Source: Pelomyxa schiedti (taxonomy: Eukaryota; Protista; Evosea). Taken from it: 64,000 nucleotides of DNA. The position numbers and the translations under genes were made by a program. The stretch spans positions 13,298 to 77,297 of the forward strand of contig JAHLWZ010000847.1 of the NCBI GenBank assembly GCA_020536535.1, in the 5' to 3' direction. This document shows, one piece after another, positions 25,607 to 54,529 of this stretch. Within the stretch, counting starts at the first letter, position 1; every line of letters begins with the position of its first letter. The notes under the pieces were generated by a model, which saw only the letters and a list, made by a program, of their open reading frames with translations, ran no database searches and was not told the origin of the DNA.

Positions 25607-28600
25607 TTATTCTGAATTTGACAAAATTTTCTCCAACTCCTGTGCCACAACACTGAAATCTGGGTTTTTTTTTTTTTGTGTTTTTGCAGTGTAAGTGGTG
25701 ACAAATAGGAAGAAAAAGAAGAACCTGGCCTTTGCTCAGGGTCCTGTGCCCAGCACGAGGAAATCAAAGTAGACAGTTCCTCAGGAAAGTCAGAGGGGAA
25801 TTCTTTGCGCTTGGGAAGAATCAGAAAGTAGAAATTACAAGGGGAATGAGAAACCTTTCCGGAGGTGACGAATTCTATAATTTCTGTGATGGAATAAGGA
25901 GTGCATTTATTGGGAATGTGAAAAAAGAGAAGAGGAAGCATACTCCAGGTTGACGGGAATGAGGAGGGGGGGTACGGGTCAGGATCAACGAGAAGGCAGT
26001 AGGCTAAAAGTGCAAAACTGTGTTTTCAATTTGTGAGTAGAGAGCAAATTTCTAGCCTAAGAGGAGAAACCTGTACACATCAGAGGGCTTACTGTAAGAC
26101 GCGTTGTTGAGTACTTCTGGGGCCATGAATGTGGGTGTCCCAACAGCAGCAGTCATGTTGGCACTTACAGTTTTTGAAGCAGACTTTGCCACATCACGGG
26201 TGGTACCAAAATCCGTGATTTTGCCACAAACATCGGAGTCCGGGTCTAAGGATGAGAGTAAGATATTGTCAGGCTTGAGGTCCCTGTGTATGATGCCACT
26301 CTACAGATCATGGTTAAGTCTGCGGGAATGGAAGGGTAAAGTACTTGGTGCAAGAAGTTCATTCCTCTGGCACAATCGACAAGAATTTTTACTTTTTGCT
26401 TTCCATACAATTTTTTATGTTTCATGACATGCCCTAAACTACCAAGGGTCATGAATTCCTGCAGAATTTTAGTAATGGAAAGAAGGTAGATGAACAACTG
26501 TCACTATGGAAAGCTGTTTCTTGAAATGTACAGCACCAATGAATTTAACTATCTGGATTGGTTTAGATTAATGGAGAAACTCGACTCGACAACCTGTGGG
26601 CAATGGAGGCTCTCCATTGTTCGCACCTAGAGAGGGGTTTTGTTGAAGTACAATAGCTTTTAGAATGCTAACCTCACTGCAAAATTCATTGTAAACTTCC
26701 ATGGAAATATCAGCACTTTTTAGAACCTGTGCCTGAGGTTTGTGCGGCAATGAAAACATCTTTAAAAAACCTTGACAGCTACATCCTGGCCACGCCATGT
26801 GCCTCTATATACAGTTCCAAACGACCCTGCCACCGTCAATGGATGAACTAAGAAAGAAGGAGAACCTTCGCCAACAGGTGGTTTCTGGAGGGTAATCTCC
26901 TCTGGATCTAAATGCGTCGACATTTTTGTCTCGACAACAAGAGGAATTTCGGTGTGCTGTATATCAATACGGCTATCAAAATTGGTTCCTTTCATTCATT
27001 TGAGAGAATTCCGTTGAGAAAATTCTACTACCACTGGCAGCTGCAAGAACAACAGAGGTGTCAAGCGCGGTTGTGCAGTGTACAACAAACTGGATTTTAA
27101 TATTTACAGTTTCTTTCTAGTTTAGGTGAGTACTTTAAAAATATGAACTACAGTACTTTGCGTAGAGTAGCTGTGCTCGGTTCAATGGCCAGCTTGTATT
27201 TATAAGACCTGATGGTCAATATATCATAATGTCATATTGTGATTGGGAGGATTACTTTGGCGGGAAGAATTTGTATGTCATTTTTTTCTTCCCTGCATTT
27301 ACAAGAGTGAAGGTTTGCGTATAGTCCTTTCCCACTGAGGCTTTGTGCCCGTGGAGTTCGAAGGCGAACTCTGAAATTGAACACTGCCCACAAAAATTAG
27401 ACGGGGGCAAAACTCTACAAAACCACATTTAATACGAAGTCAGCTAGCAGGAAATGTCTACAGCAAGTTAGGGGGACGAAGAGTTATGAGTTTCGTACTG
27501 AGAGCCTTCTGTTTCGAATTTTTCAGCAGGAGAATCATCATCGAGGAAGAGAGTGGATAATGCTTGTCCAGAAGGTTTTCTATGTTGTGAAAAAAAGGTT
27601 ATTTGATTTTAGACTTTTTATATATACCGCTTTTTCAGGTAAATTGCAGCAAGAATTGCTAAGCCAGCTAAAAGGCCAAAAAGCCCAACAGATATTCCAA
27701 TATACAAGCCATAATCAATACTATCGATATCTGGTTGGTATCAGTTTTGTCAAGTAAATTTGTTTGCTATACTAAAGTTGAAAGAAAGCTGCTCTGTCAA
27801 CTCGGCGCTATTTCCGTTGGTGTCCTTTGTGCAGCCCTCAATTAATGAGACCACACACATCATACTATCTCCCTTATCGTCGAAAATATCAAGGGAGTAG
27901 GTCTTGTTATCCAGATTCCATGGGTGGCAGTTGTTGACAGAACACCCGTCTGAGGTTTCAAAACAAGAGTCTTTTACACCTGTGACCAGTTCATCACATG
28001 TAAAGTTCACTGAAACAGATGGAGAATCTGATTGAGAGGCTCCCCCAGAAAACCAGCAAGTGGGTTTTTTCGTGTCATTGAAGTAAAAAAGGGAATAGGG
28101 CTTGGTATTTCTCACCCCATCCACAACTATCCTAACTGTGAGATTGTACCCCGAGCCTTTTTGCAGGGAGCATGATATGATTGAGTGATTTTGCACCATA
28201 TTCACGGGTTCGCATGCAATGGAATTATCAACTATGACTGTGATGCGGCTAGCAGTTGTCCCAAAGTTTGTACCTAATTTGATGTAACTCTCGAGTTGAT
28301 GTACAGGAAAGTAGCACCTGTTATGGTTGAAACACCACCATCATTTCCAACAGTAGTCATATCTTGAATTTCAGGGGCTGGAAGGTGTAAAATTGGGGTA
28401 TTTTGTATTGTAATTCTACCTGCATATGAAAACGTATTCAACGAAGCTGTAAGAGTGTTCTGGGATCTTGGTACATATACGTAGAGGATTGGAGACCCTG
28501 TGCCCTCAGGGGCATGGCATTGGATTTGAGTGTGGTCAACTGTGACTCGGGCACCCTGGCATTCAGAGTTTCCAATCTTTACTGCTACATCGGTACAACT

Positions 28601-31600
28601 CGGACCGAAATTTGTTCCAGATATGTTAATGAGCATCCCTGTTGTTGATGGTTGATTTGCCCAGGATACCGTAGGAGCTGTTTGTGGAAAATTTTTTAAT
28701 TCTAAGTCCATGGAGAATTCATGGAGAAACCTTGGTAAGTGAAAACATTGCTGCTACCTCTAGTAGGTGTTCCAGAGCAAGGAACTTCAACGGATACGTG
28801 AAGAGAAGGGCCAGCACCAACTGGTGCAATGCACTCAATGCGTGTATGATTTATCACCAACGCATTTGTGCAATTGCGTGCTATGGAGCATACATCTATT
28901 ACTGTCACACAGGCATCAGTACCAGTGGGACCAAAATTGGAGCCAGAGAGTGTTACAACTGTGCCACCAGATGTTGGGGGAGAAGGATAAACTGAATGAA
29001 TCTCTGGGTCTTTTTTTAAATAAAGCTGAGATGTAATTTAGGCAAAGATTTCGCTATACCTTTGTACCAAAAAACTTCTGCACTACCGGAAAGCCTGTGG
29101 TCTGAGTCATTATTATATACAGTTACAGTCACAGATTGGGAGGCACCAACACCCTCGGGAACAATGCACTGGATCTGAGTGTGGTTTTTGATAACTGTTG
29201 CATTCCGGCAGCTTTTCCCCCCAATTAAGACATCAACAGGAGTTCCCGCCTCACCAAAATTTGAACCAACTATATTCGTGACTATGTTGCCAGTGGTTGG
29301 AGTTGACTGGCCGTAAGAAACCTGTGGTGCTGAAGACAAGTTATTAGTTGCACTCACACGCAAATTATGCATACGGAGATATGAAAAGCTCCATGTATCA
29401 TTTTGTGAAAATGTGGCATTCTCAGAAAGTGCAGGGACATGAACAATAAGATCATACCCCTTCCCCACCCCAACTGGTGGATAGCACGTTATACAAGTCT
29501 CAGAAATTACAACGCTACTGCATTCTTGCCCCTTCACCATAACTGAGGCACTTGTACCAAAATTGGTTCCATAAATTTGTGTTGTTGTTGTTCCATCGGT
29601 GCTTGCCATTGTAACAGCAGCTATTTTTGGTGCTTGATGTAATGTTAAACAAGAAATTTCTGTGTGAATGGAAACCTGAATAATGCCAGAAATATGTATT
29701 GCTCATCTGTCCAGAAGAGTTGACCTGAGCTGAATGGAGACCCTCACTATGCCCAACTTTCAGAACGATGCAAGTAGAGTTGTAGATGTAAGAAACTCGA
29801 GAAGTGAAGTTATCCAAAATAACAAACACAGGTCTGGTGCCACCTGGCCCAAAGTTTGATCCCTACACCAGACGTCAAACACTTTCTTGAACTGAGCAGG
29901 AATACCCAAATGATGAGCGGAGAGCCTGCTGCTGTTGAGGGTTCATTTGTAAACTCAATTGCAGGACCTTCACAGTGTCAATGCAAGCATTGCGTTATCT
30001 CGAACTCTCACCTGAATAACTGAAGCCATAGAAACTGGCACATGTCCCATTTGTTTGGGGAACACATACCTCTAATAGAAGTCCTGCACCATACCCGGGT
30101 TCAACATCACAGGAGATTACAGTATCAGCCACAGTCACAATAGCATTTTTACATAAAACACCGCCAATAGTCACCATGGCAGGTGAATTAGCAGGCCCAA
30201 AATTGGTGCCACTAATGTACGTTTTACCTCCAGAGGTAGCCACTTTTGAGGAATTAACGATGGTAGGACCTGGAAAAAAGTGAATAAACTTTCAAATGAC
30301 CAGTAGCTACCTTCATAGCAGAATACAGGAAAACTTTGAGGGGGGCCAGATAAGTGGACAATTACTGGTAGATGACACCCACAACCAGGAGGTGAAATAC
30401 AAGTAACTTCAGTGTGAGCTACAGAAACAAAAGGATCCGTGCAATTCGTGGAGCCAATTTCCACGTACAGGGAAGTGTTAAGAGGTCCAAAATTGGACCC
30501 CTGCAGTTTGGTAAGTCCACCCTCCGTTATAGTTGGAGTTGCACTAAGTACAATGGGTCCTATATAATGATGAGTGCTGTATCGAGTGGAATACATAAAA
30601 ACCTGCATAGGAGAAATTGGATGATACTGCCATTTGGGTGTGCGTAGAATTGCATGGAATATACAAAGTTACTTCAATACCGTCACCGTAACCGGCAGGC
30701 GGGCTGCAAGTTATTTTTGTGCCTTCTGTGGACACAAAGGCACTTTCACAAGCGCAGATATCATTCTGGCAAGTTGCGTGGCCATGAGTGCCTGTGCCAG
30801 CTAGAGTAATACAGACACTTGAAGAGATAGGTCCGAAGTTTTCCCCCTGTGTGACCAATGGTGACTTTCCATCAGTGCTCACGCTGCTAAAAGAACGAAT
30901 AACAGGTTCTAGGACAAGGTCACAAAAAAAATAAGAGCGACTCTAAGCTTACTTTGGTAGCTAAAAGTGAACCAATTGCTGACTTGACCATCAATAGAAA
31001 CTTGAATGGTCCAGTTACTTCCAACTCCTGGTGGAAACGTGCACATTAACGTGTTGTCACTTGTCCAGTGTGCCATCACCCATGAGTCACCATCAAACGT
31101 CGAAAGTATGGGATAGTGGCCATCAGGTCCAGGTCCAAAATGGATTCCATACTATTGAGTTTAGTGGCAACAAAGTTTATACTATAGTAAGTACCAGTAT
31201 AAATTGACCTCCAGAAGTAGCAACATCATTGATAGCTTTGATCATAGGAGCTAGATTTGATTGTTATTGAGGTGAAAGATTTACCAAAACAACCTGGAAA
31301 GGAGAAGTCACTTGAGAAGACAGGTCTTGATGATCCTCGAGGTACCCACAATGTTATATTCTTATGTGTTCCCACACCGACAGGAGGACTGCAGGTTATT
31401 TGCATATGTGGTACTACAAGTACTGCAGTTTGGCACTCCTGTCCGTCGATTTCAACATAAATACTGGTTCCTGTTGGCCCAAAATTGGTTCCGTAGATGT
31501 TCACTTCGTTGGTGCTCTCAGAGTAATTGGAAAAGGTGAGGGCAGGTGCTGGATTTTTTTTTTTTTAAAAAACAAAGACACTTGTTTGCATACCATTATA

Positions 31601-34600
31601 GGAAAAGTCCGAAACAGATGACACAACAGTGTACCCAGGGCAGCCAATTTCCAGCCTAAGAGGATTGTCACATCCAACTCCAGGTGGAACAACAACAAGG
31701 GCCAAACTACTGCTGATGATAGTTGTATTACATGGGAGGTCATCAATGTATGTAAGCCCAACTGTGCCTGATGGACCAAAATTTGTTCCCACAATAGTTG
31801 AATATCCACCACTTGTATCAACCGAACTAGAATTCAACAATAGGGGGGCTGAAGACAAGAGTCAGATAAGTTCAAGTCTGGGAGAATGTGACCTGCAAAT
31901 GAGAAGTTAGGGAAGTATCCTATCTGAGTCTGAGAGCTATCTATTGGAACAAACAATTCTATCTCAACATCACTTCCTGTGGCAGGTGGGGTATAACAGG
32001 TTATTTTAGTGTGTGGTATTATGACTGTTGCATTTGTGCACTCAATTTCTGTCTTGAAGCCACAGTCATTACCGAAAACTGACATGAAAATTGCAGTCTG
32101 TGTATCTTTGGGACCAAAATTGTACCCCAATATAACAGTTAACTCATTCTCCCTGCTCGCGGATGTAATAATTGGAGCTATTTTTCATAAGCATCATGCT
32201 CTAGAAAGGAAAAAAAAAACCTTGGTAGGAAAACAGAAATGGAAGGCTGTGCTGCCCACTAACAGCGATAACGAGAGAGTGATTTCTACCAGAGAGTGCA
32301 GGGAAAAAGCATGATACAGCAGTGCTATTAATGCAGTATGTGATTTGAGGGATGCCATCGACAATACATTGTTCAGGATAAAAAGAACCGACAGCGAAAT
32401 AGTGACCCTAATCCTTGTGAATAAATCTATAACCCTCAGGAAATAAGTCTTACAGTGATAACATAGAAGCCACCAGTAGTTGAAATTTGGGGAACATAAG
32501 CAATCTCAGGTGCTAGGAGGGAATTAGTCTTAATTGGAATTAGGGAGGAGAACCAAAATATGAGAAAACAGGTGAGCTGCCGCATTGTTGTGTGCTTGGT
32601 GGAGCACAAACTTCAACCGTAAGGTTTGCTCCAGCAGAGATATTTGTGTAACAACTGACAGATGTATGATTTACTACAACTGATGCATTTGAGCAATCTG
32701 TTCCATTTATTGTCACAGAAACACGAGAGCCAATGGGCCCAAAGTTGGAGCCTCCAACAGTCACCTTCTTGGGGTTTTCCAGTTCTGTGTCAGACTTGGA
32801 ATCAATGTTTGCTGAAAGTACAACTGGCTCTGGTGTTTTGGTTATTTTTGTTTAGAGTATGGTTGGGATGCATACTGTTGTACGAAAAAATAGGATAGAT
32901 ATCGGATTTAATGCCTGCTACTTGCACCATAACATCAAGCAAAGACCCGTACCCAGGAGGAGATAAGCAAGTAATTTGGATGTGTGATGATTCCAAGTTG
33001 GTGGTTGGGGAGGTGCAGACTCGGTTCTCAATTGTCACAAAAAGTGGTGTTCCTAGAGGTCCAAAGTTGCTTCCATGTATGGTGGTAAAATTACCAGGAG
33101 TATTTGTTGAGGAGATGTTGAATATAACTGGCTCTAGAAATGTGTCATTGAAAAAAAAAAAAATTGAGAAGGCAGTACTGGAAAAACTGAAGGCTTCGAA
33201 TACCCCAGATTGATTATGAGAACCAAGTGGTAGTATAACTATTACAGTGTTGTTACTGCCAGCCCCAGCGGGGGGGAAACAAGTGATTTGGGTATGTGGT
33301 ATTGTAACCGTAGCACTTTTACATTCGCAGTTCACACAAGGTATGTTATCTCCAGTGATTGTCACAAGAAGGTTACTTTCTGTACCAAAGTTGGTGCCAT
33401 TAATAACCACTTTTTCCGATGCATCTGTTTTCACTGAGGATGTACTAGTAATTGATGGCGCTAGATTTCTGTTAGAATGAAAGAGGATCCCGGTAAGGAA
33501 AACCAGAAAATCTGAATTCCGACATGGCACTAATTTGATCTGCAACATTGACCATTAAAGGCAGGTGCGCACCCACACCAGGGGTGAAGTTGGCCAAAAT
33601 CTCTGTGTGGCTCACCCATTGTGAAGGAACCCAGGCAGTATCCACAAGAGTTTTTAAAACGTAACTGCCACCTGGTCCAAAGTTTTGTCCCTGTTTTTCT
33701 TGTTAATTTACCTTCCCAAAAGGATCAAAAAAAAAAAAAAAAACCATTATTATGTGCTGCAGGCTTCCTGCAGTTGGTACAGGATCAGTACCAATAATTA
33801 CAGGGGCTGTGATTTTTGAGTGGGGAGTGAAAAATTCAAAAGGGGAAACCTTTGTAGTGAAATATCATTGCCTCTGTTAACTGGTTTCCAACACGGAGTT
33901 TGACAGGGAGATTTGCACCAACACCGGGAGTAACTTGGCATTGAACTGAAGTGTGAGGCGTCACAAATTGAACGTTGTCACAAGCTTTGCTGTTGACAGA
34001 GAGGAAAATTGACTCAACACTGTCTCCGAAGTTCGTGCCATTGATGGTTATGCCTCCCCCAGTGGTTGAAACATCACTCACTGCCTTTATTGTTGGGGCT
34101 TTTAATAGTTAGACAAATAACTCACAGGGGCCGCCTGACCTGCATAGGAAAAAATGTAAGCCATACCCTGCTGCCAGGTCGATGTGCCATACAGTACTTT
34201 GACAATAACAAGGAGGGAGGCACCAACACCAGCTTGAGCAGAGCACTTAATTCTGGAATGAGGAATATCTACTTGTGCACTATCACATATGTGACCATCA
34301 ATAGTTACTGAAAGTGTAGCCCCTGTGTACCCCATGTTTTCACCATAAATATAAATTTCGCCTCCCTTTGTTGTTGTTGTGCTGGCATTATACAAAATTG
34401 GTGCTGTAAGAGCGTAAGTACTATAACAAAAAAGAAAAACTACAAGGTATAGACATGTTCAGGAATTCAATGGTCTGAGAATGTGTACTCGAGGCAGGAA
34501 CGGTCAACTGTAGATAATTGACTGGCTGACTTGGTGTTGCGTAAAGACACTGGATTTCGGTACAGTTCACTGTAACTTGGGGACTATTGCATGACTTGTT

Positions 34601-37600
34601 TGTATTTGTTGTGACAGTGACTACAGTTCCCTCAGGCCCAAAATTAGTCCCTGTTATCCTTAACTTGACATTCCCGTGCTCATCAGTAAAGGTACCAATA
34701 GCCACAATTGTGGGTACTGCAATGAATGTAACTTGTAGTATATGGTACCTTTACTTGTACCTGAATATGAGAAGGCATCATCACTCTGCACTGTATAACC
34801 CGGAATGGAAATCCTTACTGGGTATAATCGACCAACTCCAACAGCTGGGACACAGGAGATCACACGGTGTGCAGATGAAACAGAGGAATTTCTGCATGGT
34901 GCATTCCTTACAGACACATTCACTGGAGTGCCGATGGGGCCAAAGTTTGTACCATACACATGGATTATAGATTCTGTGCAGCAATTGGCTGTACTTACAA
35001 GACTAATAACAGGTGCTAAACCAAGTTATTACTCAATTTTTATTTCGAAGATAACCTTGGTAAGAGAATCCTTTGTATGTCACAGTTTGGTTTTGCCGAG
35101 TTGCATAGATTCTGAGTTGTAGAGTCAAGTTAACTCCTACTCCTTCTGGAGGTTTGAAGCAAATTCGTGTGTCTGAGGCAGAAGTGGTAGTAGTCCAAGT
35201 GGAGGTGCCAATTTTAACTTCAGAGTGCGTGCCACTAGGCCCCAAATTTGTACCAAAAATGCAAGCTTCTGTTGACTGGTCAGTATTTGCTGAACTCACC
35301 GTCTCAATTTGTGGATCTGCCATATTATGGTTAAAAAGGACACATCTGGGAGAGCACACATTTGTATGAAAAGAGGTACTCCTTTGATTTTTGTCCAGCA
35401 ACGTTGACAGAAATTGTGTGATTCAAACCACTACCACTGGGAATGGGGCACTCTACAAAATTTTCGTTGAGCCATGAAGTCTTCACCCAAGAAGAGTTCC
35501 CATCAATGGAGGCAAGAATAGTTGCGGAGCTGTCAGGTCCAAAGTTAGAACCCTATGCTTGTTCAATCAAGGGTTTTTTATAAGAAGTGGACCTTTATCC
35601 TGAAAGAAGTGCTGCCAGTGGTTGGTACATATTCCATTTGAATAATTTGAGGAGCTATAACATGCACTTTAGCTTTAGTTTGACATATCTATTGTTTGTT
35701 AAAACCTGCGTAACTGAATACGGAGGCGGAAGCATTTTGACTTCCAAAAACGGGTACATAAACTTCAACAAGTTGGTTTGTTCCTGTTGATACTTGTCAC
35801 TATGACCAGATGAAAAAAAAACTACAAACCAATTCCATCAGGAGTGACACATTTTAGGCTCGTATGAGATAGAACAGTAACATTTACACATTCCCTCCCA
35901 GCAATGAATGCTGTGACAGAAGTCCCTGGTGGACCAAAATTCATACCAGAAATAGAGGTAAAAGTGTGAGGATCAGAACTTGTTGCGGATAACACAGCGG
36001 GAGCTATTCTTTGTCATCAATTGACCTCCAATGGGGAAGAAATGAAAAAGGATGCACACGGTTATAGGAGAAGATGTAATCACATGTAGTCTGTCCAGTG
36101 GAAGAGCGCGGAATGGTCACACATAACAGCAGCTGTGAACCAGCACCAGGCGGTGCCAAACAGGTAATTTGGTTGTGATTTACAGATTGAGCATTTATGC
36201 AAGTCTTGTTCCCAATAGAAACCGATGCAAGGGTGCCAGGAGGTCCAAAATTAGTGCCACTGATAGTAATTGTAATATTTCCAGTGGTGTTGCACCTTGT
36301 TGATGTCCCAATTGTTGGCTCTGTAAGAATGATGAAAGGGAAATTTTTTACTAGGGCGTTATCTACCGTCATAGTCTATAACGGAAGTAGCAATCACAGT
36401 CCCTGATGCCAGCTTCACTGTAAGTGTATTGTTTTTGCCTACACCCATGGGCGCACTGCATTGAATTTCTTCTTGGCTGATAACTTCGGCATCAGAGCAG
36501 TTGAGAGCCCCAATGTAAACGGAAACTGATGAATTTTTTGCCCCAAAACCTTTCCCAGTTATGTTGATACGCCCACCACTTGAAGGGGGGCTGGTTGTTT
36601 TCACAATAATCGGATCTGGCAGAAAGTGAATAAAGCAACAGTTGGTGGCAGGAACACACTATCGTAGGAAAAATAGGTCACAGCACTGTTATTGGTAGAG
36701 GGTAGCACTACAATCACGACTTTGATGTTTTGGCCAACTCCAGGCTTTGGGGTACACGATATTTGTGTATGTTCAACAATTACATGGGCATTTGAACACT
36801 CTTCTCCTCCAATTGTAACATTAATCGGAGTTGAGAAAAACCCAAAATTACGGCCTTGTATGATTGTGTTTGCCTGATAGTTTAAAGGAGATGCTGAGTA
36901 TGCTACAGGGCCTATTGCTCATCAGAAAAGAGTTTGATTGATTGAATTATAAAACCAGAAAAGCAGAATTTATCCCATTTAAGGGTTGAACCAGAAATGG
37001 AAACATTCATAGTCAAGTTAACTCCTATACCCACAGGGAAACATCTAATCTGTGTGTTTGCGACTGTAATTCGGGCATTCCTACAGTCGTTTCCAGCAAT
37101 AGAAACTGTGACAGGAGTTCCAATAGCACCGAAATTCTGGCCAGTAATAATAGTTTCCGTACTTCCATCAGTGTCAGCTGAAGTAGTATTCAAGATAGCA
37201 GGCACTACGTTCTGTAAATCGTGGAACTATTGAGAAGTTTGCGACCTGAAAAGCTAATATGAAATTGGGGACTGGTTAACCCCCCCACAGAAACTGTGAT
37301 AGTGTGATTTCCTGAGCCCACCAGTAGGGCTGCCTTCACTGAAGTGTATGACTCCCAGATTGACGGCACTTCCGTCCCATCCAATCGTACAACAAGTGTT
37401 GTTGTAGCAGTGCCGAAATTGTATCCCTACTTTTAGTGGGTAGATGAAAACTTGTCCTGTAATCACACATGAATTGTGCAGTTACTACATCCCTCAGGAA
37501 GCAAGCCATCAATTGAGGAAATATTTGGGCCTAGAACAAATTGTAACATTGGAAATTTAGAGAAGTGTCTGTCTACCTAAATAGGTGAATGTGTTGGAGC

Positions 37601-40253: not shown

Positions 40254-43200
40254 ATGTACAGTACCGAAACGCGGAGTGGTGGTGGTGTCAGATCTTGCCG
40301 TAGTCGGCCAGATCTTGTTGTCTTATTGCGTGCCGCCATTGTGTGCCTTTGTTGCTGTGCGACGGCGTCACACGCGACGTCATTGGGAGGTCACGGAAAG
40401 ACCTTCGCCGAGAGGGGGACATGCACAGAGGGCACCTTTGGCGTTTTTATGCACCAGTGGGACGACGGCAAATACCAGCAGGATTGCCCGCTGGGCGTGG
40501 CCAGTGGGACTTATTGTGACACCGCACCCATCAATTTTACTTTGTCAGACAGTGTGTCACAGTCTGGGTGCATTAAATATTACGGCTACCTCCAGGTGTG
40601 GAGTGCTCCTCTCTTTGTCTGTTGCATTGTCACCCAACACATGTTCCACTTTCTGTAGTTATCATCCGGCCGACCAGAGATCAAACAGCTGAGGCTAGAC
40701 CTCTCTACAACAAGTTCTAATGAGGCCACGTTGTATCTTACTACACCTGATGACACTCTCACAGCAGGAGAGAATTATTGTACTCCAACCATAATACAAT
40801 CGCACGACCAACTCTCTAATAGACATGTACAATCATGCCCCTTGCCTCCCTCCTCTTGCTGTTTCCACTAGAACCTTGCCAGCCTATCAATTTGACCCTT
40901 ACCATTTGTACCCCTTTGAAGTCCATGTGATCCAGTGCTCTTCAGATACAGACAGTACTTTTGTGTCACTGCAATGGGCAGGTGAGGATGGTGTCTACCA
41001 AGTTATTCCTGCATCAGAGTTCATCTTTGTGGATTCCTCAGAACCTGTTATATGTGAAGCTGATGTATGTGGTAAGGACACTCTTCCCATCTTACTCTCT
41101 TTCCCACTTTTATCTCTGCTTATTTAGAACCACAATTGACAAGTTTTGAGTCCAATGCTACTACTGCTGGTGATAGTTTGGTTTATATTGAGGGTTCATG
41201 GCTTGATGAATGCACAGATGTCTTTATAGGGGGAGAACCCTGTGAAATTACAAGTGTTTCTTACCTCATCCCAGGCTATATTACATGCAAACCCCCGGTA
41301 GTAATTTGGACTCCAATTACCTATGTCTCATTTAAAGAAGGAAGGGTCCCTTGGCTTGAGTTATGATTTATGGGTTGTATGCAGAGGTGTCACTAGCAGC
41401 GAACTCACTGGTTTCACTTATCAATGTTTCTTGCCCACTCTAATATTTTGTACTCTTTTGTTAAAAGTCACTAATGCAATGTAGCACCAACAATTATCTC
41501 TGCGACAGAGGCCTTCACAGATGGGTCAACTCAAACAGTAATAAGTGGTACCAGTTTTGGTCCACAGGGTACTCTTGTTACTGTTACAATTGATGGGGAA
41601 CCATGTACTTCTGCTAGTGTTACAACACCACACACAGTCATTTCTTGCTATCCTCCTCCAGGAGTTGGTGCTGACCACGAAGTACAAGTTAACTTTCTCA
41701 CTTCAGGCGAAGTAGCAAAGGAATATGTGTTCTCCTACACGAGTAATTCTCAAACTCTTTGAACGACCCTGAGGCACTCACTCCCCCAAAGGTCCATCTA
41801 TATCTGAAGTTGTTTCCACTATAGAATCTGGAAAGCAAGCCTTAACTGTAACTGGCACAAACTTTGGGAATGAATTATCCTCCATTTCTGTGGGAGTAGA
41901 TGGATATATTTGTCAGAATGTGTCGATCCTTTTTGCTCACAAATCAGTTCTTTGTTTCCCTGACTCACATGCTGTCATTGGAAAAAATCACAAAGCATCA
42001 ATCACTGTTGAATATCAAACCAGCCCAGATTTTTCCTTTGACTTTCCAGGTGAAGTTCAATTTCCAATGTTTTTTTTTATTAACTTGGCATTTTTAAGCC
42101 CCTACAATTATGTCATGCTCCAATACACCAACGACAGGGGGGGGAATTTCAATATCTGGAAAGTTTTTTGGCGCAGCTGGGGGAGCTGCTACCAGTCCTT
42201 GGGTTTATGATATTGTTGTTCTCGGTGTTGGTGAAATTAACTGTACTATACCACCTGGGGCAGGGCAAAAACTCCCTCTGCAAGTAACAGTTGGAGGACA
42301 AGATAGCCCAATAGAATATATATACTATTTCCAGGGTATCGCTACTTTGCATGGAGTTCACTCCTGACAAACTCAAGGTCCAAAGGTTGTATCTGCTACA
42401 CCTACATCTACAACGGGAGGCTACACAACAATCGTTGGCACCAATTTTGGACCAAGTGGCACTTCTATATCTGTTACTATCGACAACAAAGAATGCAAGG
42501 AAGTGGTTATGAATCACACTGTAATTCAATGCAAGACTCCAGAAGGAGTCGGAAAAAATTTGACAGTTACTGTCACATCACCAACTGGGGTCAATGCCCA
42601 AACTGCATATGCACAAGCCTTCTCATATCAAAGTTTTTTCCTTCCAGTTAACTTAAAATTCACTTCATCAGGTCCCTTGATTACCGGAGTTATTACTGGC
42701 AATTCCTATATCACCCTCATTGTATTACATCCTCTAATCTAACTGCACTCATGGTAATGTTAGGGGCAAAATTTTGCACCAAGTGGTTACACAGGAATTA
42801 CATGCTCCAATGATGATGGAAGCACGTGGACATTTGGGGAAGCTGTAAATACAACCACAATGAAGTGTTACAGCTCTGGAAACAAAGTAATGGTAATGAT
42901 TGGAGGACAGAAAAGTAACTCGAAAATCTTCACACAAAGTAAATCTAGTTGTAATCTGTGCACACTGTTATTTACTCCCACCCCAACGACAAAACAAAAC
43001 AGCTCCCACAATAGACTTAGTTACTAGTGTTGAGACTGCAGGAGGCACTGTTAACATTATTGGTCAATGCTTTGGGTCAACTTCAGTTACTGTCTACATT
43101 GACAATAAAAAATGTGAAGTGGCACAAATTATCACCCCTAATTCGCAGATAACTTGCACAGCCCCTGCAGGTGCTGGCAAGAACTTAGATGTTCTTGTAA

Positions 43201-46200
43201 TGTTCTCTTCACCACTTGTAAATGTATCTTTCAGGGGATTTTCCTATAACTGTATTGGAACACATCTTCTTTTCACAACTTATTTCCTTAGCCCCACGGA
43301 TTTTTTCTACTACTTCTGTGGATACTATTGGAGGTTATGTTTATATTAAAGGAGACAACTTTGGCCCAGCTGGAACAACTGTAAATGTCACGATTGGCAA
43401 CAAAATGTGCTCTAATGCAAGTGTTGTTACCGCTCACACAATAATTGGCTGTTTGATGCCTCCCTCTGTTGGGGGCTCCCTTGATGTTGGGGTGAATATT
43501 CCTATTGTCCCTTCACATTCACAGGAAGCACATGCACCAATCTTCTACTTCAATGGTAATGAGCTTCTTTTTTTGTTTCTCTGATCTCATCTCCAACAGA
43601 TCCTGAAATAACGGCAGTTTCCTCCGCAGACACAGATGGACACTCGAGAGTTACTATTTACGGGAAAAATTTTGGTCCTGCAAGTGCCAGTGGTGTGAAG
43701 TTTTCAATTTTTGTGTGTCTGGATAGCAGTACCTGCTCCGAGTGTCTCAATACCTCAGTTGTTGATCACAACCATCTACAGTGTTTTCCTCCTGTAGGAG
43801 TAGGAAAGGAGTATAAATTGCTCTTGAACCTCACAACAGTAAATGGAGGTTGGGTTCAGTCTGCAGAATATGATCTTTTTGATTATAAAGGTATTCTTTC
43901 ATTTTAAAGATGTGTACATTTAGGAAAATAGATCCGCTCATTCATAATGTGTCTCACCCAAGCACTACCGGAGGAAACATCACCATATATGGGGAAAACT
44001 TTGGCCCGACTGGCACTCCAATTGCAATTCATATTGGGAGTGTGCAATGTGAAGGAGCACATATTAGCCTATCACACTTTGAAGCTAGTTGCGAAATATC
44101 TGAGGGTATTGGAGGGCCAAAAGAGGTTTATTTTGAGATTCTTCCTACAACCGAACATGCAACTAGTGTTTCTTCGAATTCATTTTTTTACAAGGGTAAG
44201 TTGACGGATTTTGTTTTGTAAGCTAATCGTTGCCCATTAGCTCCAATTATTCTGTCAGCAAAAACAGCAAGTGGTGGAGGACAAACGGAAATAAGTGGGA
44301 GTAATTTTGGTCCAACTGATACTCCCATTACAGTAACAATTGGGGGACAAACTTGTTTTTCTCCTATGGTCAAGACTGCCCATTCAAAAATTGAGTGTAC
44401 TGTTCCCACTGGTGCCGGAGTTAAGAAGGTTATCACTGTTACAGTCCCTTCAGGCTCAACAACACAGTTCTCAAGTGCCGCTCTATTCAACTACACAGGT
44501 CTATTCAAGATACAGTTGGTTCCATTAACTTTTTTTTCAGCCCCCAAGATTTCAACAGTGCCACTTGTGCCTACACTTGGGGGACTTATCCATATTCAAG
44601 TATTGACTCTGTCTTTTTTTTTTTTTGAATTAAAACACGAAGGGGTCCGACCTTGGAGCGCCATTCAACTCCATTTCTGTGTTTATCGACAGTACAAAGT
44701 CCTATTATGCAGCAATTATCAATAGTAGTACTATTCTAGCCGGGGTTCCTCCTGGTTCAGGGACAAATCATTGGGTTTATGTGTGCATTGAATCAATATG
44801 CACATCTGCCGCTCTTCTTAGTTTTCAATGTAATCTCTCCACCTTGTAAGTACTCGATTATCCAAGTTAAGTTTCCCTTTAGCGCCAGTGTTCACATCTT
44901 CTACTGGCGCCTCGACTGATGGTTCTGCCTTCACCACACTCCATGGATCCAACTTCGGTCCGATTGGCACTGTGGTGAGTGTCTATTTCCCATCGAAGGG
45001 TTCCTACTGCTTGAATGCAACAGTATCTGTGCAGCACACACAAATTAAGTGCCGTCCTCCTCCTGGTGTTGGCTTGGACAATACTATATTAATCACTGTT
45101 GGAAACACTGGAAGTGCATTATCTACAGTTAGCAATGGGTTCTCATATGATCGTAAGCAAAGAATTTTTTTTTTTGGCACCCAACCTTCACTCAGCTCCA
45201 GCACTGTCATTTGCAACTCCAGCTGATACTGTTGGGGGTATAATTACTATTTGTGGGTCCAACTTTGGTGACCTTGGAACCAATGTGACCGTGATAATTG
45301 GCCTAGCTGAATGTGAAGGAGCCAAAGTTTCACTTGCACATAAGCAAATCCAGTGCTCAGCACCAGCAGGGGTTGGCAAGAACTTGAAGGTTACACTTAA
45401 TGTTCCTCAGACTGGTTATTTATCTACTTATTCCAACATCTTTTCTTATAATCGTATGTATTTTTTTCCTATGACTGAAAGTTGACATCGAAAAAGCCCC
45501 AGTTGTTACCTCTGCTTCTGAGGTTAAAAACGGGATGTACAACATCTCAATTTTTGGGAAAAACTTTGGAACTTCCATCAGTGTTGCCGTAATGATATCC
45601 GGGAAACCCTGCACAGTGACAAGTGTCTCTCAAACGGAAATCAAATGCATTGCACCCCCTGGCTCAGGGCCTTGCCGACCAGTGATCGTCACAGTACCTG
45701 CTGGTGTAAATGCCCAGTCCAGTATGGAAGCTTATGTGCTAAATTATACTGGTAGCACCATAGATGTAGTTTTTCACTGATTTGTTATCAAAGGTCCTGG
45801 ATTTTCTAATGCCAGCACCACCACAACTGAAGGTGGTCTGACAACTATATATGGACAGAACCTGGGGGCTGTCGGTGACAGTTTGATAGTGAAAATTGAC
45901 AATAAGTTGTGTGCCAATGCCACCGTTACGAAGCTCAACTCAGAAGTTCAATGCGTTGCTCCACAAGGAGCTGGCAAAAACTTGATTGTGCATGCGACAC
46001 TAGTTGATGGGACATTCCTCACAGAGGCCCCTGTATTCTCTTATATGCGTATGCATAGATTGCGTTCTTCGTTTCTGTTGGCTGATTTTCTTCAGCACCA
46101 ACAGTGTCATCTATCTCGCATTCCGACACAATTGGGGAGGAAATCTCTCTAGTAGGAACGAATTTCGGTCCTGTGGGAACCAACATTAGTGTAATGATTG

Positions 46201-49200
46201 ACCATTTGGGGTGCTCAGAGGCATATATCACAAAGAGTCATCAAGAAATTACTTGTGTGGCCCCCGCTGGTGCAGGTATAGCTTCGGAATTACTTGTAAT
46301 TTACAAACTGACACAAAAAGGTTCAAATATCCCAACAACTGTGTGCATCCCCACTACTAATCCACAGTGTATTCATCTTTCTTTCTCTTACAATGGTTCG
46401 TTTCCCATCGGCTTGTCTTTTCTTTGAAAAAACTACAAAAAAAAAAAGCTCCTTCAATCAGTACTGTCACACCTGTTTCCACTGCTGGCGGGAATGTTAC
46501 TATAACTGTATTCCATCTCTTGATAGATCAGCGTGTTTGTTTATAGTAGTTTAGGGAAACAATTTTGGACCTGGTGGTTCATATCTTGTGGATACTTCAA
46601 CAGATGGAACTACATGGCTTCACTCAGAGCAAATTAGCCACACTATTGTAAAGGCGTTAGTGGCACCTGGCTGTGGTAAAGGCCGGAACATCACAATTCG
46701 TGTTGTGGATCAAACAAGTGTGCCTGCCCATTTCAACTATTCAGGTATGCCATCCCCAACTCTTGTGCCTTTCTGACTCCTAGAAAGCTCCTACAATATT
46801 ATCTACTTCCTCTCCAAGCACGAGAGGGGGTATTCTGACACTAACAGGCATAAACTTTGGCATTTCTGGCACTCATGTAATTGTTAATATTGGAAAGCAA
46901 CCTTGTTCGACAGCAACGGTTGCAGTTCCCCACACGGAGATAACATGCACAGCACCCTCCGGCACTGGCGTTGTACAAGGAACTCTATTAGTTCCAGATG
47001 ACCTGCGTTTCAGTCAGAGTACTTCTTTCCAAATGACATATGCAGGTATTTCAAGATTTGAGTACTCCCTTTCTAATTTTGATAATTTAGTGCCTGAGAT
47101 CTACGTCATGACTCCCACACACACGCAAGGCGGTACAACTGAAATATATGGAGATAACTTTGGCCCTGTTGGAACTCCAGTTTCAGTGGCCATCAATGGA
47201 GCATCTTGTTTGAATCCTAAAGTCGAAGTGAACCACACCAAGATTACGTGTACTGTGCAGCCTGGGTGTGGTACAACTTTGTCTGTTAAGATAAATGTTT
47301 CTTCCATATATTCTTTTACATCAATATTCTCCTTTGCAGGTTTCTCATTTCCTACCTCCTGTCTTCTCACCTTCCTGTAGGACCTTCAATAATAAATGCC
47401 ACTGCAGTTAATACCAGTGGAACAGAGGAAACCCTTATAACAGGCATAAACTTTGGGCCGCAGAATGACTCTGTTTCTGTGTTGATTGGGGGAGTTAACT
47501 GTACGGAGGCACAAGTTATTAGACCTCATCAGACAGTGTCCTGTTACCCACCACCTGGTGTTGGAGCCAATCTATCAGTTGAATTGTGCGTCCACTGCAA
47601 CGGTTTGCAATGTACCTCAGCACCTGTATTTCGTTACAGAGGTAAATCACGGTCCAAACTGTATGCTTACTTGCACTTAGAACCTGTCATAAAATATGTC
47701 CCCCCTGTGCCAACACAGGGGCAATGGATAACAGTGCTGGTTTGTTTTCTTTGGCTTTCTTTTTTCTTTTTATGAGGTTGTGCTAGGGTGATTTCTTTGG
47801 CACCATAAACAGTATTGTAACATGTGCCACAAACCCCAGTGGACCAACACCAGCACAGTGGCTAAATAATACAGCTCTTAACTGCTCTATTGGTGAAGGA
47901 CTTGGGACTGGTCTTGTTGCGGTTTGTATTGCAGGGCAATGCAGTAACTCATTCATTTTCCATTATCAAGGCGAGTACAACCGTAAAGTATTTACTCTAA
48001 TTATCATAAAAGCTCCTACCATTGATAGCATTCCATCTCCCAGTACCAATGACTCACTGCTGACAATTTTTGGAAACAACTTTGGACCCGATAATACAAT
48101 CCCATCAGTTTTCATATGCAAGGATGAATTGTGTACTTTGGCTTGTAAGAATGCAACTGTGTCCGTCAAGCACACCGTCATAACATGTCAGCTTCCTGTC
48201 AGTGTAGGGGCAGGTTATATTGTGAACGTTACCGTTGGTGGGCTTTATGGACTTGGGACCTTTTCGTTTAAAAGTACCTGGCTAATCTATTTTCCTGTCG
48301 TTTTCTAATTAATTTACCCCAGGCCCACTTATTCATAGCGCCACCTCTACCAATACCACTGGCGGTACTACAACCATTTTAGGAGAAAATTTTGGCCCAG
48401 AAAACACAACAATCATGGTGCTCTTGAACGCAGTTTCTTGTTTACACCCTGTTGTTCATTCACACAATCATATTACCTGTGAAGTACAACCAGGGTATGG
48501 TGCACTTCTAAACGTTGTGGTTATTGCACCCCTTGGTGAATATCATCAGAATGGGTCTGCTCCAGTTTTTTGCTATAACGGTAATTCCACGATATGAATT
48601 CCTAAGAGCTGATTTTTTTAGCTCCTTCTATTGTTTCCATGACTCCCACCCCCACCAGTGGGGGTATCGCCACCGTTTACGGAAACAATTTTGGACCCTC
48701 TGGGAGTCCCGCCATTGTTACTGTATCAAACTTTTCATGCAGCAACGTAACAGTTATAAATCACACTCAACTGAAGTGCAATGTCCCTCCTGGTTGTGGG
48801 GGTACTAATACTATGGTTGTGTGCCTCCCTGATACCTCGAACTGTGGCTCGCCATCCCTTTTTCTTTACATAAGTATTGTCTTGTATCTTTTATTTTAAG
48901 AATCATGTATTTAGGTCCTACAATTGTCAATATGTCTCTCCCCCCAACTAATGGAAGTTGCTCAATCCAAATTACTGTACACCACTTTTCTATATACAAT
49001 GTTTACACAATTAGGGATCGAATTTTGGGTTGCCTCTTTGTACTGTTTCTGCCATAGTGGATGGATACAGCCAATCAGCAACCATTTTATCACATACCAC
49101 GCTTTCTGTATGTGTTCCTGTTGGAAGTGGCTCAGGACATCTTATTCAAGTAGTTGTTCAGAACCTAGGGAGCAATTTGCTTACTTTTTCATATCATGGT

Positions 49201-52200
49201 TTACAACTTACTTTCCCCAAACTTACTGAGTGTTATTTCAGTTCCAGAGATAAACCGAATCGAGTCTGTGAAGACAAGTGGTGGCAAGTTGACAATTTTT
49301 GGTACGAACTTCGGACCTCTTGGGACACCTGTACTTGTTTCTTTGGAGGGGCTGGGAGTGCAGTGCTCACATACACCAAAATGCATTTGTTCCAACGCAT
49401 CTATTTCTATTGCCCACACCGAGATATCTTGTTCTGCACCTCCTGGTGTTGGAGGGGACCACACCATTAATATTACCATCCCCGCAAATAATTATGGATT
49501 GAGCACCAGTAGCAATATTTTTGCGTATTCAAGTTTGTCTCTATGCCTTTACCTTTTTCCTAATCTCTCATAGGCCCTATTGTGACATCAACCTCACCAA
49601 CAAGTACTACAGGTGGCATAACTGTGATTGAAGGGGACAACTTTGGCTTGTCCAATACCACTATCGCCGTCTATTTATTTGTACTGGGAAACTACTCCCG
49701 GTGTACTGATCTTTCAGTCTCCATTCCCCATTTGGAACTGCAGTGCAGGATGCCAGAGGGCTATGGAGAAAATTTGCCACTAAAAATTACTATTCTAGAA
49801 GGATACCCAGGCTCTCAATCTGTGGATGCATCATTTTCCTACCAAGGTTTTTTGCCACCTCTTTCAATTTTTTTCTCATATATTTCCAGCGCCAGTTGTT
49901 TTAAGTTCAACACAAACCAATACAACTGGAGGCATCGTTCAGATAACTGGGGTGAACTTTGGTCCCCTGGCACTGACAGACATCACAGTGACAATTGCTG
50001 GAACAAAGTGCAAGAATCCAAATGTCTCCGTTGCTCACACACAAGTCACTTGCACGGCCGATAAAGGAGCAGGGGCACAGCAATTGATTGAAGTTACAGT
50101 ACCTGCAGGAAGTAATCAACAAGGGAGGGCCTATGTTTTTAGCTATTTCCGTGCGTTTTGCTTTCCACAGTTCGAACTCCCCATGTAATGTTACATAGGT
50201 CCCCAAATTACCTATGTGCCACCAGTACCTACTACAGCCAGCAAGCCTGTCCACCTCATTCAGGTCTCTATTCTCAATCTAGTGTCTCCTTACTAAGCCT
50301 GTAGGGGGTGAACTTTTCTCCTTTTAATAATATTTCTGCACTCGTTGTTATTGAGGGAATTACTACGGTTGCTACATGGGATAGTGCAACTAGTATCTAT
50401 GCCTCATTCCCTGAAGGAGTGGGTGCCAATCTTTCACTTACAGTCACTGTGGCCAATCAAACAAGCGACAACTTCCTATGGAATTACCAACGTATGACTT
50501 CATTTTTTCTCCCTTTTCTCATCCCAGACAGCACCTGTTATTGAGTTTGTTAGTGAAGCCCCTGATGAGAACCAAGTTGGAATAACTATTGGTGGTAGTG
50601 CCTTTGGCAAGCAAGGTGACAACATCTTTGTCTTTCTAGATTCAGTGCCTTCTGTTGCATGCAGTAATGTGGAAGTTACTATCCCTGATGTACTACTGTG
50701 GTGTGCTATGCCCCCCGACTACGTTTGGAGTGGAGGTGTCTCTGTTATTGTTCCTTTTGTTCCAGGCCATAAGCAACAAGGAGACTACTTACGGACCACA
50801 TCTGCTCCCGTTATAAGTTATGTAACATCAGTGGACACAACTGGTGGAAGCATAACCATAATTGGGAATAACTTATGGAATTCCCATACCGTTGTTGTAA
50901 CTGTGGGGAATAGTAGTTGCAACAATGTAACAGTTGACCCACCCACAGTAGTTACCTGTATAGCTCCGCCCGGTGTAGGATCTGGCCTTCGAGTTACAGT
51001 GTCAGTAGGCGATTTGAAAGGAGAATTTCCTTCATTTTCGTACAATGGTATTCCCAGATGTAAGCAACTTCTGCACTAACTATGTGACACAAAAAAGCAC
51101 CTATAATCCTGTCCGCCACACCTGCACCAACAGTTGGTACTGTTACCACAACGATCTATGGAAATAACTTTGGGCCTGTTGGCACACCTGTTACTGTTAT
51201 GTTGGAGTTCACAGATGAGCCTGGTGTTCTAAAGGAGTGCAATAACGGTGGCAACCAAACCCTCGTTACCGCCGAGGGCAAGATTACATGTATGCCTCCT
51301 CCCGGCTGTGGGAGTGGACACTCCATACATGTAACAGTTCCGTCAAATTTGCCATCAACAGAGTCATTAACAAGCAGCGCAGCTGTTTTCTCGTATGAGA
51401 GTATGTATTGACAATCTAAGCTCCAAACTAAATATTTAACAGTTCCGCGCCCTCTCACCACTTCTTCTGTTGATACAACCGGTGGATACATTTTTATAAA
51501 TGGCACCAACTTCTGTGATTCAACCACAAGTGCAACTGTGACAATAGAGAAAATACCTTGCACAAATGCAACAATTTTAACCCCAACATCTATTGCTTGC
51601 TTGGCTCCAGCTGGCACAGGGCAGGGAAAATGTATTGAAATTACTATTCCTGCAGGATCTGACCAAACAAGCAATTTGTGCACATTCCACTATAACGGTT
51701 TAGAAACGAAACCTTTTCTTTTTAATGAATCTCCTCTAGATCCTGTTATTTACTCTGCCACCAACGTCTCTACGGAAGGAGGTGTAACAAGTATTTCTGG
51801 TATTTCAGTCCCTTCTCGCATTCTTTCTGACCTTAAAAAGGGTTGAATTTTGGGAAAGATTCCAGCATAATTACTGTAAAAATTGAGCAGAACGTTTGTG
51901 GAAATGTCACAATCCTTGACGACCATGTTCTTTTGTCGTGCGTTGCTCCGGCAGGAATTGGTACCAACCTCCAGCTTTCCGTAACTGTTGGAGTGCAAAA
52001 GTCTAGTGCTTTCAATGGCTTTTCTTACGTTGATGTGACACCGCCATACTGCCAACTTTACGCAGGATTTACTGAATCGTCATCAACAAAATTTGTTGTT
52101 GATCTTCAATGCCGAGAAATTGTCTATAACGTATCTACATCGGCGTTCACTGCGAGTGGCTGTGCTGTGGAACACAAGTTAGACACAACCCCAAGGCAGA

Positions 52201-54529
52201 ATTATAAAATCCCTCTCAAGCAAGTGGATAAAGCGGAAGAGTGCACAATTACTCTAAAGCCACTTATTGTTTATGATGCTGCCCACAATTTCAATAACGG
52301 CTCAAACACTTTGACTGTAAAAGTAACTGGTACTGGACCGAATTTCCTTTTAGATTACTTACTTTCAACAAGCAAACTCGACGACTGAAATCATCATTGG
52401 ATTAGTTTTGGGCCTTGTATTCTTGGGTGCTGTGGGGGCACTTGCCGGTTTTGTATTCTTCATGAAAAAGAGGCTTGCACCCCGCAAACCCGAACCTCTT
52501 TAATTGATTCATTCCAGGAACCAGAAACCACAAGAAGAGGGAGTTGTCATGAGTGACTTGTTCGGTGCTGTTGAAGATGAGAATGATGAGGAAAAGTTTG
52601 ACACATCACAGTCAAGGTTCCTTTTCCCCTCAGCTTCCCTCCACAAACTTTTCGTTTGTTACAGCGAAGTTGCTCTTCCGGAATGCATGTTAGAAGTAGA
52701 CAATTTTTACTCTGTGTTTGTTCTCATTTAACTGACAGGTGTCAGTTTCGACACTCAAATTTGGCCTTAATTATCGTCAATGTCCTGTTGGTGAAAAGAT
52801 TTCGGAAACTGTTTCCCTGGTTAATTCAACAGGCCGCCCCATTTATTTCAAATTCTTCCCGCAAAGATCATATAAATATAAAATGGTTGTGGACCCTGTT
52901 GCAAGTGTCATTGATCCGGTATCTTTTTTAAATGGAGAATTTAAAGTTTACTTAAAACGTCAAGACCTATGCCATGGATGTTACACTACATATGATTGTT
53001 ACCTGCACAACTGTAATTGAGTCATTCTTACTCCTTGCATGCAGCCCAGGTTCAACCGAAACTTTGGAATCTCTTTTAGCAAATAACTAGTTTAGGTGAA
53101 CAACTTGACGGGGATGAACTACAACACTGTAAGATTCCTTTTAAAATTGAGTCCAGACTTTCCACCAAGGTTCCCTTCTTTTTTTCCCTTCCTTACTGAG
53201 ATTCACGCTAGTTGGATCCCGAAGAACTTGATTTGGTTATGCCTCCAATTGGTGAAGGGACATTTGGTAAGGCTCGAGTGTTTTCTTTTTTCAACTCCTC
53301 AACAGTATATAGGCACAGTTTACAGAGGAACTTGGAGAGGACAAGCTGTGGCTGTCAAAGTGTTAAAATCTAAAGGCATTTCCAGCAAAGAAAAAGTAAA
53401 AGAATTCACTCGTGAGGTTGTAGCTCAGACAAAAACCTATGCTTATACTGACCCTCATTCAGGTGCAAATAATGGAAGAACTACAATCTCCACAGATAAT
53501 CAATTTCATTGGTTCTGTCCAGGTCAAATCTCAACTTGCAATAGTAACGGTACCTGCGTCTCTATTAATTAGTGAATTATTTTACACTGTTACAGGAGTT
53601 CATGTCTCTGGGCAACTTAGAAAGTGTTATGAAGGTAAAAGGCTTATCTTAATGCCATTTTTTGATTTTACTTCAGAAACAAACGCTTTCCCTTAAGCAG
53701 AAGACAAAAATACTTTTAGACTGCGCAAAGGGGATGAACTTCTTACACCAAGTTGTCTTCTTCCACCACCTTTTTCTTTACTAACTGTGAGGTTTTGTAG
53801 AGTGGTGTTATTCACAGGTTTACCTTTATTGATTCATTGTAGCAGTTTCCCATTTACCTGCATTTCTTTAGAGATCTCAAAGCGGGGAATCTACTTATAT
53901 CCTCCCTAGATCCTACTAGTATTGTCTGTGTAAAAATCAGTGATTTTGGAACAACGAGAGAGGTAAATTCTGCCAAAGACCAAATGACTATGAATGTGGG
54001 CACACCTACTCACATGGCGCCTGAGGTACTTTTTTTTTTGTTGCCCCTTTTTGATTTGTACAGGTTATTGAAACCGGAAATTACACGAGTAAAGCAGATG
54101 TGTTTAGGTACGTAGTGCGTACACCCCTTGTTGTAACTCTGCTATAGTTTTGGAATTTTGGCATACACACTCCTGACTGGCACAGGTATGAGCTCACCAA
54201 GGTTTCTTTTATTTCTCCTCACCAAGTACACAGAACCTTATACCTCTGAAGACTTTTCATCAGCACCCTGGAGTATCATTCTCTCTTTTCCTTCCATCAG
54301 ACCTAAATTTATCCTTCTTCAATCAGAAATTGCTGAATTTGTCATTAGTGGAAAGAGAATGAAAATCCCAGATTCTACACCATACCCAGACCTCATTGAG
54401 GCATGTTGGGCTCCAGACCCCAATGAACGACCTGGTTTGTAAAGAACCAACCTTGTTTTTTCCTTTGACTCTTTCTCAGACTTTGGGGCTGTTTCTGAAG
54501 CTCTAGAACGGATGCTCAACAAACTATAA
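40254..54529 (+). CDS. Giant receptor kinase B, paralogue of kinase A with the same architecture
   Basis: ATG 40254, leader LVVLLRAAIVCLCCCATASHA; PA14-like tip (IKYYGYLQ..LYPFEVHVIQ..VSLQWAGEDGVYQVIPASEF); 35 IPT repeats; DVTPP..DAAHNFN Ig-like domain; TM IIGLVLGLVFLGAVGALAGFVFF; LKFG..PVG..N domain; GEGTFG, VAVK, HRDLKAGN, DFG, APE; TAA 54527-54529. Confidence 0.9.
41129..52030 (+). repeat. Array of 35 IPT/TIG domains in kinase B
   Basis: Manual count; repeat starts at about 41129, 41484, 41792, 42099, 42379, 42672 ... 51098, 51443, 51740, nearly all separated by phase-1 introns. Confidence 0.8.

Follow-up and report, generated by a model that had tools for sequence, protein, structure and literature searches.

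The Entamoeba TMKs have been described as surface kinases linked to growth and phagocytosis (PMC2880585, PMC2211552), and a CXXC-rich, Igl-related ectodomain was their defining feature (PMC2880585). We analysed a 64,000-nucleotide stretch (the window) that was part of contig C847 of the Pelomyxa schiedti assembly (PMC8887013) and carried two giant receptor kinase genes, A and B, located head to head. P. schiedti is an anaerobic amoeba. Names such as C218 denote contigs of the same assembly, and the genome searched comprised 52,367,397 bases in 5,337 contigs. Similar to the Entamoeba TMKs (families A-F; EhTMKB1-9, PATMK), A and B encoded a signal peptide, one transmembrane helix and a TKL-type kinase, and a juxtamembrane domain was common to both groups (profile matches with E from 1e-17 to 2e-5). 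However, the ectodomains of A and B contained 0.3-0.9 CXXC motifs per 1000 residues, compared with 19-23 in the TMKs, and consisted of a predicted PA14-like tip followed by 35 IPT repeats. The Pelomyxa IPT kinases formed their own clade (support 97/96) with the Entamoeba kinases outside it, and both belonged to the same wider amoebozoan module.

The combination of a TIG ectodomain, a transmembrane helix and a kinase was already known. Dictyostelium VSK3 (from the rk family) and MET/RON shared with A and B an IPT/TIG ectodomain, a single transmembrane helix and a cytoplasmic kinase (PMC2064856); compared by architecture, they differed in having one TIG domain (VSK3) or a few (MET/RON) rather than 35, and in lacking a PA14 tip. 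Giant examples existed as well. Namely, receptor kinases of Mastigella eilhardi had the same juxtamembrane domain as A and B behind shorter arrays of 9-12 IPT repeats, whereas PRP82680.1 of Planoprotostelium fungivorum had a TIG array and a kinase but no juxtamembrane domain. The latter protein, annotated as an autotransporter, was a 4,467-residue receptor kinase with 25 TIG repeats, PAN and leucine-rich repeat (LRR) domains and a transmembrane helix. No match to the tip of A and B was found in the IPT kinases of Mastigella or Planoprotostelium. In our searches A and B were among the longest IPT-repeat receptor kinases, and the PA14-like tip occurred among such kinases only in a quartet made up of A, B and one gene each on C218 and C788. 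Within the same searches, this PA14-tipped 35-repeat quartet and the reciprocal exchange of its tips were new.

Dictyostelium TgrB1 and TgrC1 resembled A and B in other respects, since they were single-pass IPT proteins encoded by head-to-head genes (PMC13648343) and marked by recombination near the N-terminus (PMC12745789). Unlike A and B, the Tgr proteins had no kinase, and the tgr genes formed more than 20 pairs per genome that were clustered, hyper-polymorphic and subject to fast turnover (PMC13648343, PMC12745789), whereas A and B were one ancient and stable pair. An earlier note on this DNA had ascribed a Tgr-like ectodomain to the pair. In an allorecognition locus of that type, A and B would act on different cells through allele-specific binding of highly polymorphic tips. 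The layout and the N-terminal recombination would suit such a locus, but we considered it very unlikely: neither duplicates nor fragments were clustered at the locus, there was no asymmetry between receptor and ligand, both partners carried kinases, no copies were recent (the closest paralogues were 39-41% identical), and the recombination found was ancient and single. Matches to the Ig_TgrO1 profile were faint, in 4 of 32 repeats with a best E of 0.014 in a comparison by profile only. Pelomyxa is not known to aggregate, which also counted against allorecognition.

The 35-repeat quartet and the pairing of its tips

The four tipped genes each had 35 repeats in register, and 49 introns were common to all of them. 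The model of the C218 gene agreed with KAH3765385.1 at 99.9%. A and B were 34.5% identical overall and 59% identical in the kinase; their repeat boundaries aligned, and the same-numbered repeat of B was the best match for 8 of the 35 repeats of A, where about 1 was expected. Moreover, repeats of a variant kind, interrupted by an additional phase-0 intron, occupied positions 6, 12, 18, 22, 26 and 30 in both genes. Since the repeats were in register and the variants held the same positions, A and B had arisen by an old duplication of an entire 35-repeat gene, and the best explanation for these paralogues was an inverted duplication of a whole receptor kinase gene. The only DNA similarity left between them was a single match of 20 bp where an exon meets an intron. 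The possibility that A and B were recent sisters was rejected by the kinase tree, where A was sister to the C218 gene (support 100/99) and B to the C788 gene (100/97). These second A-type and B-type genes were unlinked singletons. At C788 a SYS1-like gene lay in tandem about 430 bp upstream, and at C218 two tRNA genes were followed by a scaffold gap where a misjoin was possible.

The pairing seen in the kinases extended over most of the protein. In repeats 3-35 and in the cytoplasmic part, A grouped with C218 and B with C788 (p <0.004 per block in the approximately unbiased (AU) test), and all 11 three-repeat windows from repeat 3 onward favoured A with C218. The tip together with repeats 1-2 showed the opposite pairing, with A next to C788 and B next to C218 (combined AU p 0.001-0.006), and each of these two parts by itself, the tip or repeats 1-2, favoured A with C788 (AU p 0.01-0.03). 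A permutation test in which any breakpoint was allowed gave p 0.0002 and located the switch where repeat 2 ends. Only A and C788 had no intron separating repeat 1 from repeat 2, and among later private introns three joined A with C218 and five joined B with C788. The tip groupings were tested under three alignment modes and two models with control windows; across the three aligners, both models, the controls and the intron character, an alignment artefact was rejected.

With two types of tip and two types of stalk plus kinase, every combination was present among the four genes, and an exchange of tips between two pairs of genes was evident from these comparisons. Because the pattern was reciprocal, one crossover was needed. 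A second duplication would have been followed by a single crossover near repeats 2-5 that exchanged the tips; an inversion involving two head-to-head copies would be a plausible cause and the simplest. The tips would be swapped equally well by a reciprocal translocation if the copies were unlinked, which weighed against the inversion, and either pairing of the tips may be ancestral, as four genes of one species were compared. With an inversion as its cause, the exchange would be a clean, datable case of a head-to-head duplication re-wiring receptor input to output. The same geometry would permit phase variation, in which the middle segment would continue to invert and so swap the tips between A and B, and an old exchange was on record. 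We found this scarcely credible and rejected active inversion: DNA identity between A and B did not go beyond the 20-bp match, no recombinase-type inverted repeats were present at matching repeat positions, and the exchanged copies were separate, diverged genes.

Gene models and domain anatomy

The gene models were produced by a self-trained gene parser with subsequent manual correction. Both were stop-free throughout after splicing, and each had 63 introns (median 43 nt), all of them GT-AG apart from two GC-AG introns in B. Several introns were in frame and stop-free, so that individual junctions of these models, built from the DNA alone, may be wrong. In two single-cell RNA runs, 10% and 6% of the sequence words from positions 37100-43000 were present, and these could not be assigned to either gene.

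The earlier note had described two giant genes of 14,365 bp (A) and 14,276 bp (B) diverging from a 282-bp gap, each with a PA14-like tip, 35 IPT repeats, an Ig-like domain, a transmembrane helix and a TMK-type cytoplasmic module with an intact kinase. The coordinates and the stop-free models agreed with this layout, all the parts were found in both genes, and the cytoplasmic module was of the TMK type, with a juxtamembrane domain common to Entamoeba kinases and an intact TKL-type kinase. A and B were confirmed as real genes with the anatomy as first described (Table 1).

Table 1. Features of genes A and B, with positions counted from the first nucleotide of the window
Feature	Position	Strand	Remarks
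Gene A	25607..39971	-	ATG 39971, TAA 25607; 64 exons, 3,832-residue receptor kinase
A signal-peptide-like hydrophobic stretch, residues 46-64	39780..39836	-	hydropathy; Met 59/60 alternative starts
A PA14-like tip	39042..39760	-	predicted family fold; groups with C788 tip
A 35 IPT/TIG repeats	28077..38997	-	nearly one repeat per phase-1 exon
A repeats 2-5, inferred ancient crossover interval	37528..38706	-	5' part with C788, 3' part with C218
A membrane-proximal Ig-like domain	27773..28076	-	only a weak Big_12 match (E 0.13), in paralogue C218
A single transmembrane helix	27645..27701	-	
A juxtamembrane ASH/MSP-fold domain	26912..27383	-	common to Entamoeba TMKs
A TKL-type kinase domain, intact	25607..26911	-	sister to C218
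Intergenic gap, 282 bp	39972..40253	.	probably the promoter region of both genes, each faced by (CAAA)n runs
Gene B	40254..54529	+	ATG 40254, TAA 54529; 64 exons, 3,804-residue receptor kinase
B signal-peptide-like stretch, residues 21-39	40314..40370	+	hydropathy
B PA14-like tip	40380..41071	+	groups with C218 tip
B 35 IPT/TIG repeats	41130..52031	+	in register with A
B repeats 2-5, inferred ancient crossover interval	41487..42674	+	
B membrane-proximal Ig-like domain	52032..52329	+	homology to A and C218
B single transmembrane helix	52390..52446	+	
B juxtamembrane ASH/MSP-fold domain	52739..53169	+	model pLDDT 89.8; OCRL ASH domain E 4e-7
B TKL-type kinase domain, intact	53212..54529	+	sister to C788

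In the public annotation, KAH3746092.1 was identical to residues 59-2219 of gene A and then ended prematurely inside an intron, so that the database split the gene. This product ran into the intron at 31849-31892 (minus strand), ended at 2,180 residues and was named 'zymogen granule membrane glycoprotein', whereas gene A continued to the kinase. KAH3746093.1 (3,509 residues) corresponded to gene B but lacked eight in-frame pieces as well as the signal peptide. We rejected the (CAAA)n inverted repeat in the gap as a promoter motif specific to the pair, because unrelated genes were preceded by (CAAA)n too.

The Pfam TIG profile (PF01833) was matched by all 32 repeat exons tested, with a best E of 1e-11, and the ectodomains carried 84 (A) and 66 (B) N-glycosylation sequons. 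The glycine loop and the VAVK, HRD, DFG and APE motifs were intact in both kinases. The juxtamembrane domain (120 residues) was modelled as an ASH/MSP fold with a predicted local distance difference test score (pLDDT) of 90, its best PDB match was OCRL (E 4e-7), and its profile found receptor kinases of Entamoeba, Mastigamoeba, Mastigella and Tieghemostelium.

The tip (about 180 residues) had no Pfam match, including PA14 and GLEYA, at E 0.5-1. A model built from the four aligned tips was a beta-sandwich with a pLDDT of 66. Against solved structures, PA14 domains took Foldseek ranks 2-6 (with VIA at the top, Z 8.8), and the nearest structures included sugar-binding PA14 domains from adhesins of bacteria and yeasts. 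The nearest Atlas clusters were PA14 in 10 of 10 cases (TM 0.54-0.58). With moderate confidence, we assigned the tip a PA14-like fold. No tip homologues outside the four genes were found by sequence or language-model search, and none was found in the long N-terminus of the C790 annotation. In the known PA14-tipped adhesins (Marinomonas RTX adhesin, yeast Epa/Flo/Cea1), a PA14-type fold ends a long stalk, as predicted for A and B, and the stalk of the RTX adhesin likewise consists of tandem Ig-like domains. Unlike A and B, these adhesins have no kinase; sequence identity was 10-14%, and sugar binding by A and B is presumed.

Proposed function and the question of pairing

From the adhesin-like anatomy and from earlier findings on Entamoeba TMKs (PMC2880585, PMC2211552), we leaned slightly towards A and B each being a long-reach, lectin-tipped sensor acting on its own. 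The PA14-like tip, carried on a glycosylated Ig-like stalk that might reach about 120-140 nm if extended (our estimate, with 3.5-4 nm per domain), would probably bind sugars of bacteria or of other surfaces. Ligand binding would cluster the receptors and switch on the TMK-type kinase, and the ASH/MSP domain could dock partner proteins from trafficking or from the cytoskeleton. The most likely role would be in feeding or the handling of bacteria, presumably at the cell surface. The head-to-head layout would be a relic of duplication, probably with shared transcription and no obligate partnership. Since P. schiedti eats bacteria yet keeps three endosymbionts, the four receptors were concrete candidates for telling them apart.

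Several points weighed against these lone sugar-binding sensors. The tip model was a modest one from four sequences, and its best Z score was obtained among many jelly-roll folds. The calcium-binding acidic pair of PA14 lectins was not visibly conserved in the four tips, and thus the tip may bind something other than a sugar. There was also a hint that pairing may be selected, in the form of head-to-head TMK-type genes on C626 and C917.

The location of the proteins was the subject of another possibility, in which A and B face the lumen of phagosomes or symbiont vesicles and control vesicle maturation. VSK3, which has a signal peptide, a TIG domain, a transmembrane helix and a kinase, resides on late endosomes and lysosomes (PMC2064856), one P. 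schiedti symbiont is kept in vesicles (PMC10579272), and the best match of the ASH fold was the Rab8-binding domain of OCRL. However, fold likeness to OCRL does not establish Rab binding, EhTMKB1-9, a relative in Entamoeba, is located on the surface of the cell, and a stalk of more than 100 nm with 66-84 N-glycan sequons better suits an exposed, adhesin-like role. We judged the lumenal location unlikely.

The earlier note had interpreted the pair as a candidate two-gene recognition system and raised the question whether IPT kinases recur as divergent A/B pairs in two clades. Our counts of IPT loci were lower bounds, since the best 150 matches were scored, and C626, C917, C171, C22, C450, C576, C291, C471 and C639 were judged from coordinates and public proteins. 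An IPT array followed by a juxtamembrane exon was found at no fewer than 13 loci (A, B, C218, C788, C790, C225, C832, C1056, C171, C22, C450, C576 and C291). Among the matches listed, 11 of these 13 kinases were single genes and only C847 had IPT arrays on both strands, so that recurrent divergent IPT pairs were rejected; upstream of C790, C225 and C832 there was no opposite-strand IPT gene within 14-15 kb. The two kinase clades did exist, each with one extra 35-repeat member, but the pairs did not recur and the family consisted mostly of scattered singletons. Thus, the support for a recurring two-gene system was weak, and the evidence spoke for an evolutionary history rather than for a recognition system. 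PTEN-like and TSG101-like genes, unrelated to each other, diverged across 189 bp in the window (59859/60049), and other unrelated divergent gaps there were of about 400-900 bp. A gap of 282 bp was therefore ordinary here. The names PTEN-like and TSG101/UEV-like reflect sequence resemblance, and the short first exons had no Pfam match.

The same observations bore on the idea that A and B form a co-receptor pair of matched length in one membrane, transcribed together, whose tips contact a ligand at equal height and whose kinases cross-activate, with C218 and C788 as a second A-type/B-type pair that lost its linkage. We regarded this as rather unlikely, although the A-type and B-type genes numbered exactly two each, every one of them had 35 repeats, they carried the only four such tips, and each pair had one tip of each type both before and after the exchange. 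The short gap between A and B was in line with it, and so were the head-to-head TMK-type genes on C626 and C917 by their juxtamembrane-exon coordinates. On the other hand, C218 and C788 were unlinked, short divergent gaps were common in the window, and both kinases were intact, showing no pseudokinase asymmetry. Repeat number was also kept between other sisters (about 29 each in C790 and C225, about 10 and 9 in C1056 and P0054), as expected if the repeats were too divergent for unequal crossing-over. An obligate co-receptor, if real, would represent the first TMK-type system of heterodimers among Archamoebae. A stronger version, which we considered quite doubtful, would make the quartet a two-by-two system of A-/B-type heterodimers, where the inversion re-wired tips to kinases and allowed combinatorial recognition of prey versus obligate symbionts.

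The TMK-type juxtamembrane exons on the two other contigs pointed apart at C626:39286-42530 and C917:38543-43499 and belonged to genes with short ectodomains. Kinases downstream of the C626 minus-strand exon and of the C917 exons were not confirmed, and the C626 plus-strand gene had an unrelated ectodomain. Tandem TMK-type neighbours existed too (C116). Local duplication in either orientation could explain such neighbours, and selection for pairing may have acted as well.

Neighbouring genes and related loci

A gene at C714:35847-41120 (plus strand) encoded IPT repeats and the same Ig-like and transmembrane parts, followed by a short acidic tail without a kinase; its product was possibly a decoy or an adhesin. 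In other Pelomyxa proteins (P0021, P0058, P0030, P0164-P0168), the juxtamembrane-kinase module stood behind very different ectodomains, which had LRR with IPT, LRR alone, cysteine-rich repeats or, in one case, a solute-binding-protein-like part. For the C790 receptor, the public protein (P0004) had 1,840 extra N-terminal residues without a Pfam match, probably from a fused neighbour gene. A metagenome scan for relatives returned only generic kinases with identities of 50% or less.

Directly upstream of the C218 receptor gene, two divergent tRNA genes were located at C218:41793-42099. One was a tRNA-Gln(TTG); the second was called Leu by ARAGORN but resembled an intron-containing Ile(TAT). The 100-N gap beyond them interrupted a REP/GDI-like gene. 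A WW-domain Ras-like gene at 15936-17500 (plus strand) of the window had a paralogue of its Ras part, with an acidic N-terminus, at C218:43500-44300 (plus strand; tblastx) on the upstream side of the receptor gene, and apart from this paralogue no synteny was found between the window and the C218 locus.

Next to gene A, a WD40 (Rae1/Bub3-like) gene appeared from its sequence to contain a 53-nt intron with AT...AC ends at 25370-25422 (plus strand), with a U12-type 5' site and a branch-point-like box. The intron list of the genome paper contained only GT-AG, GC-AG and one GT-GG intron (PMC8887013).

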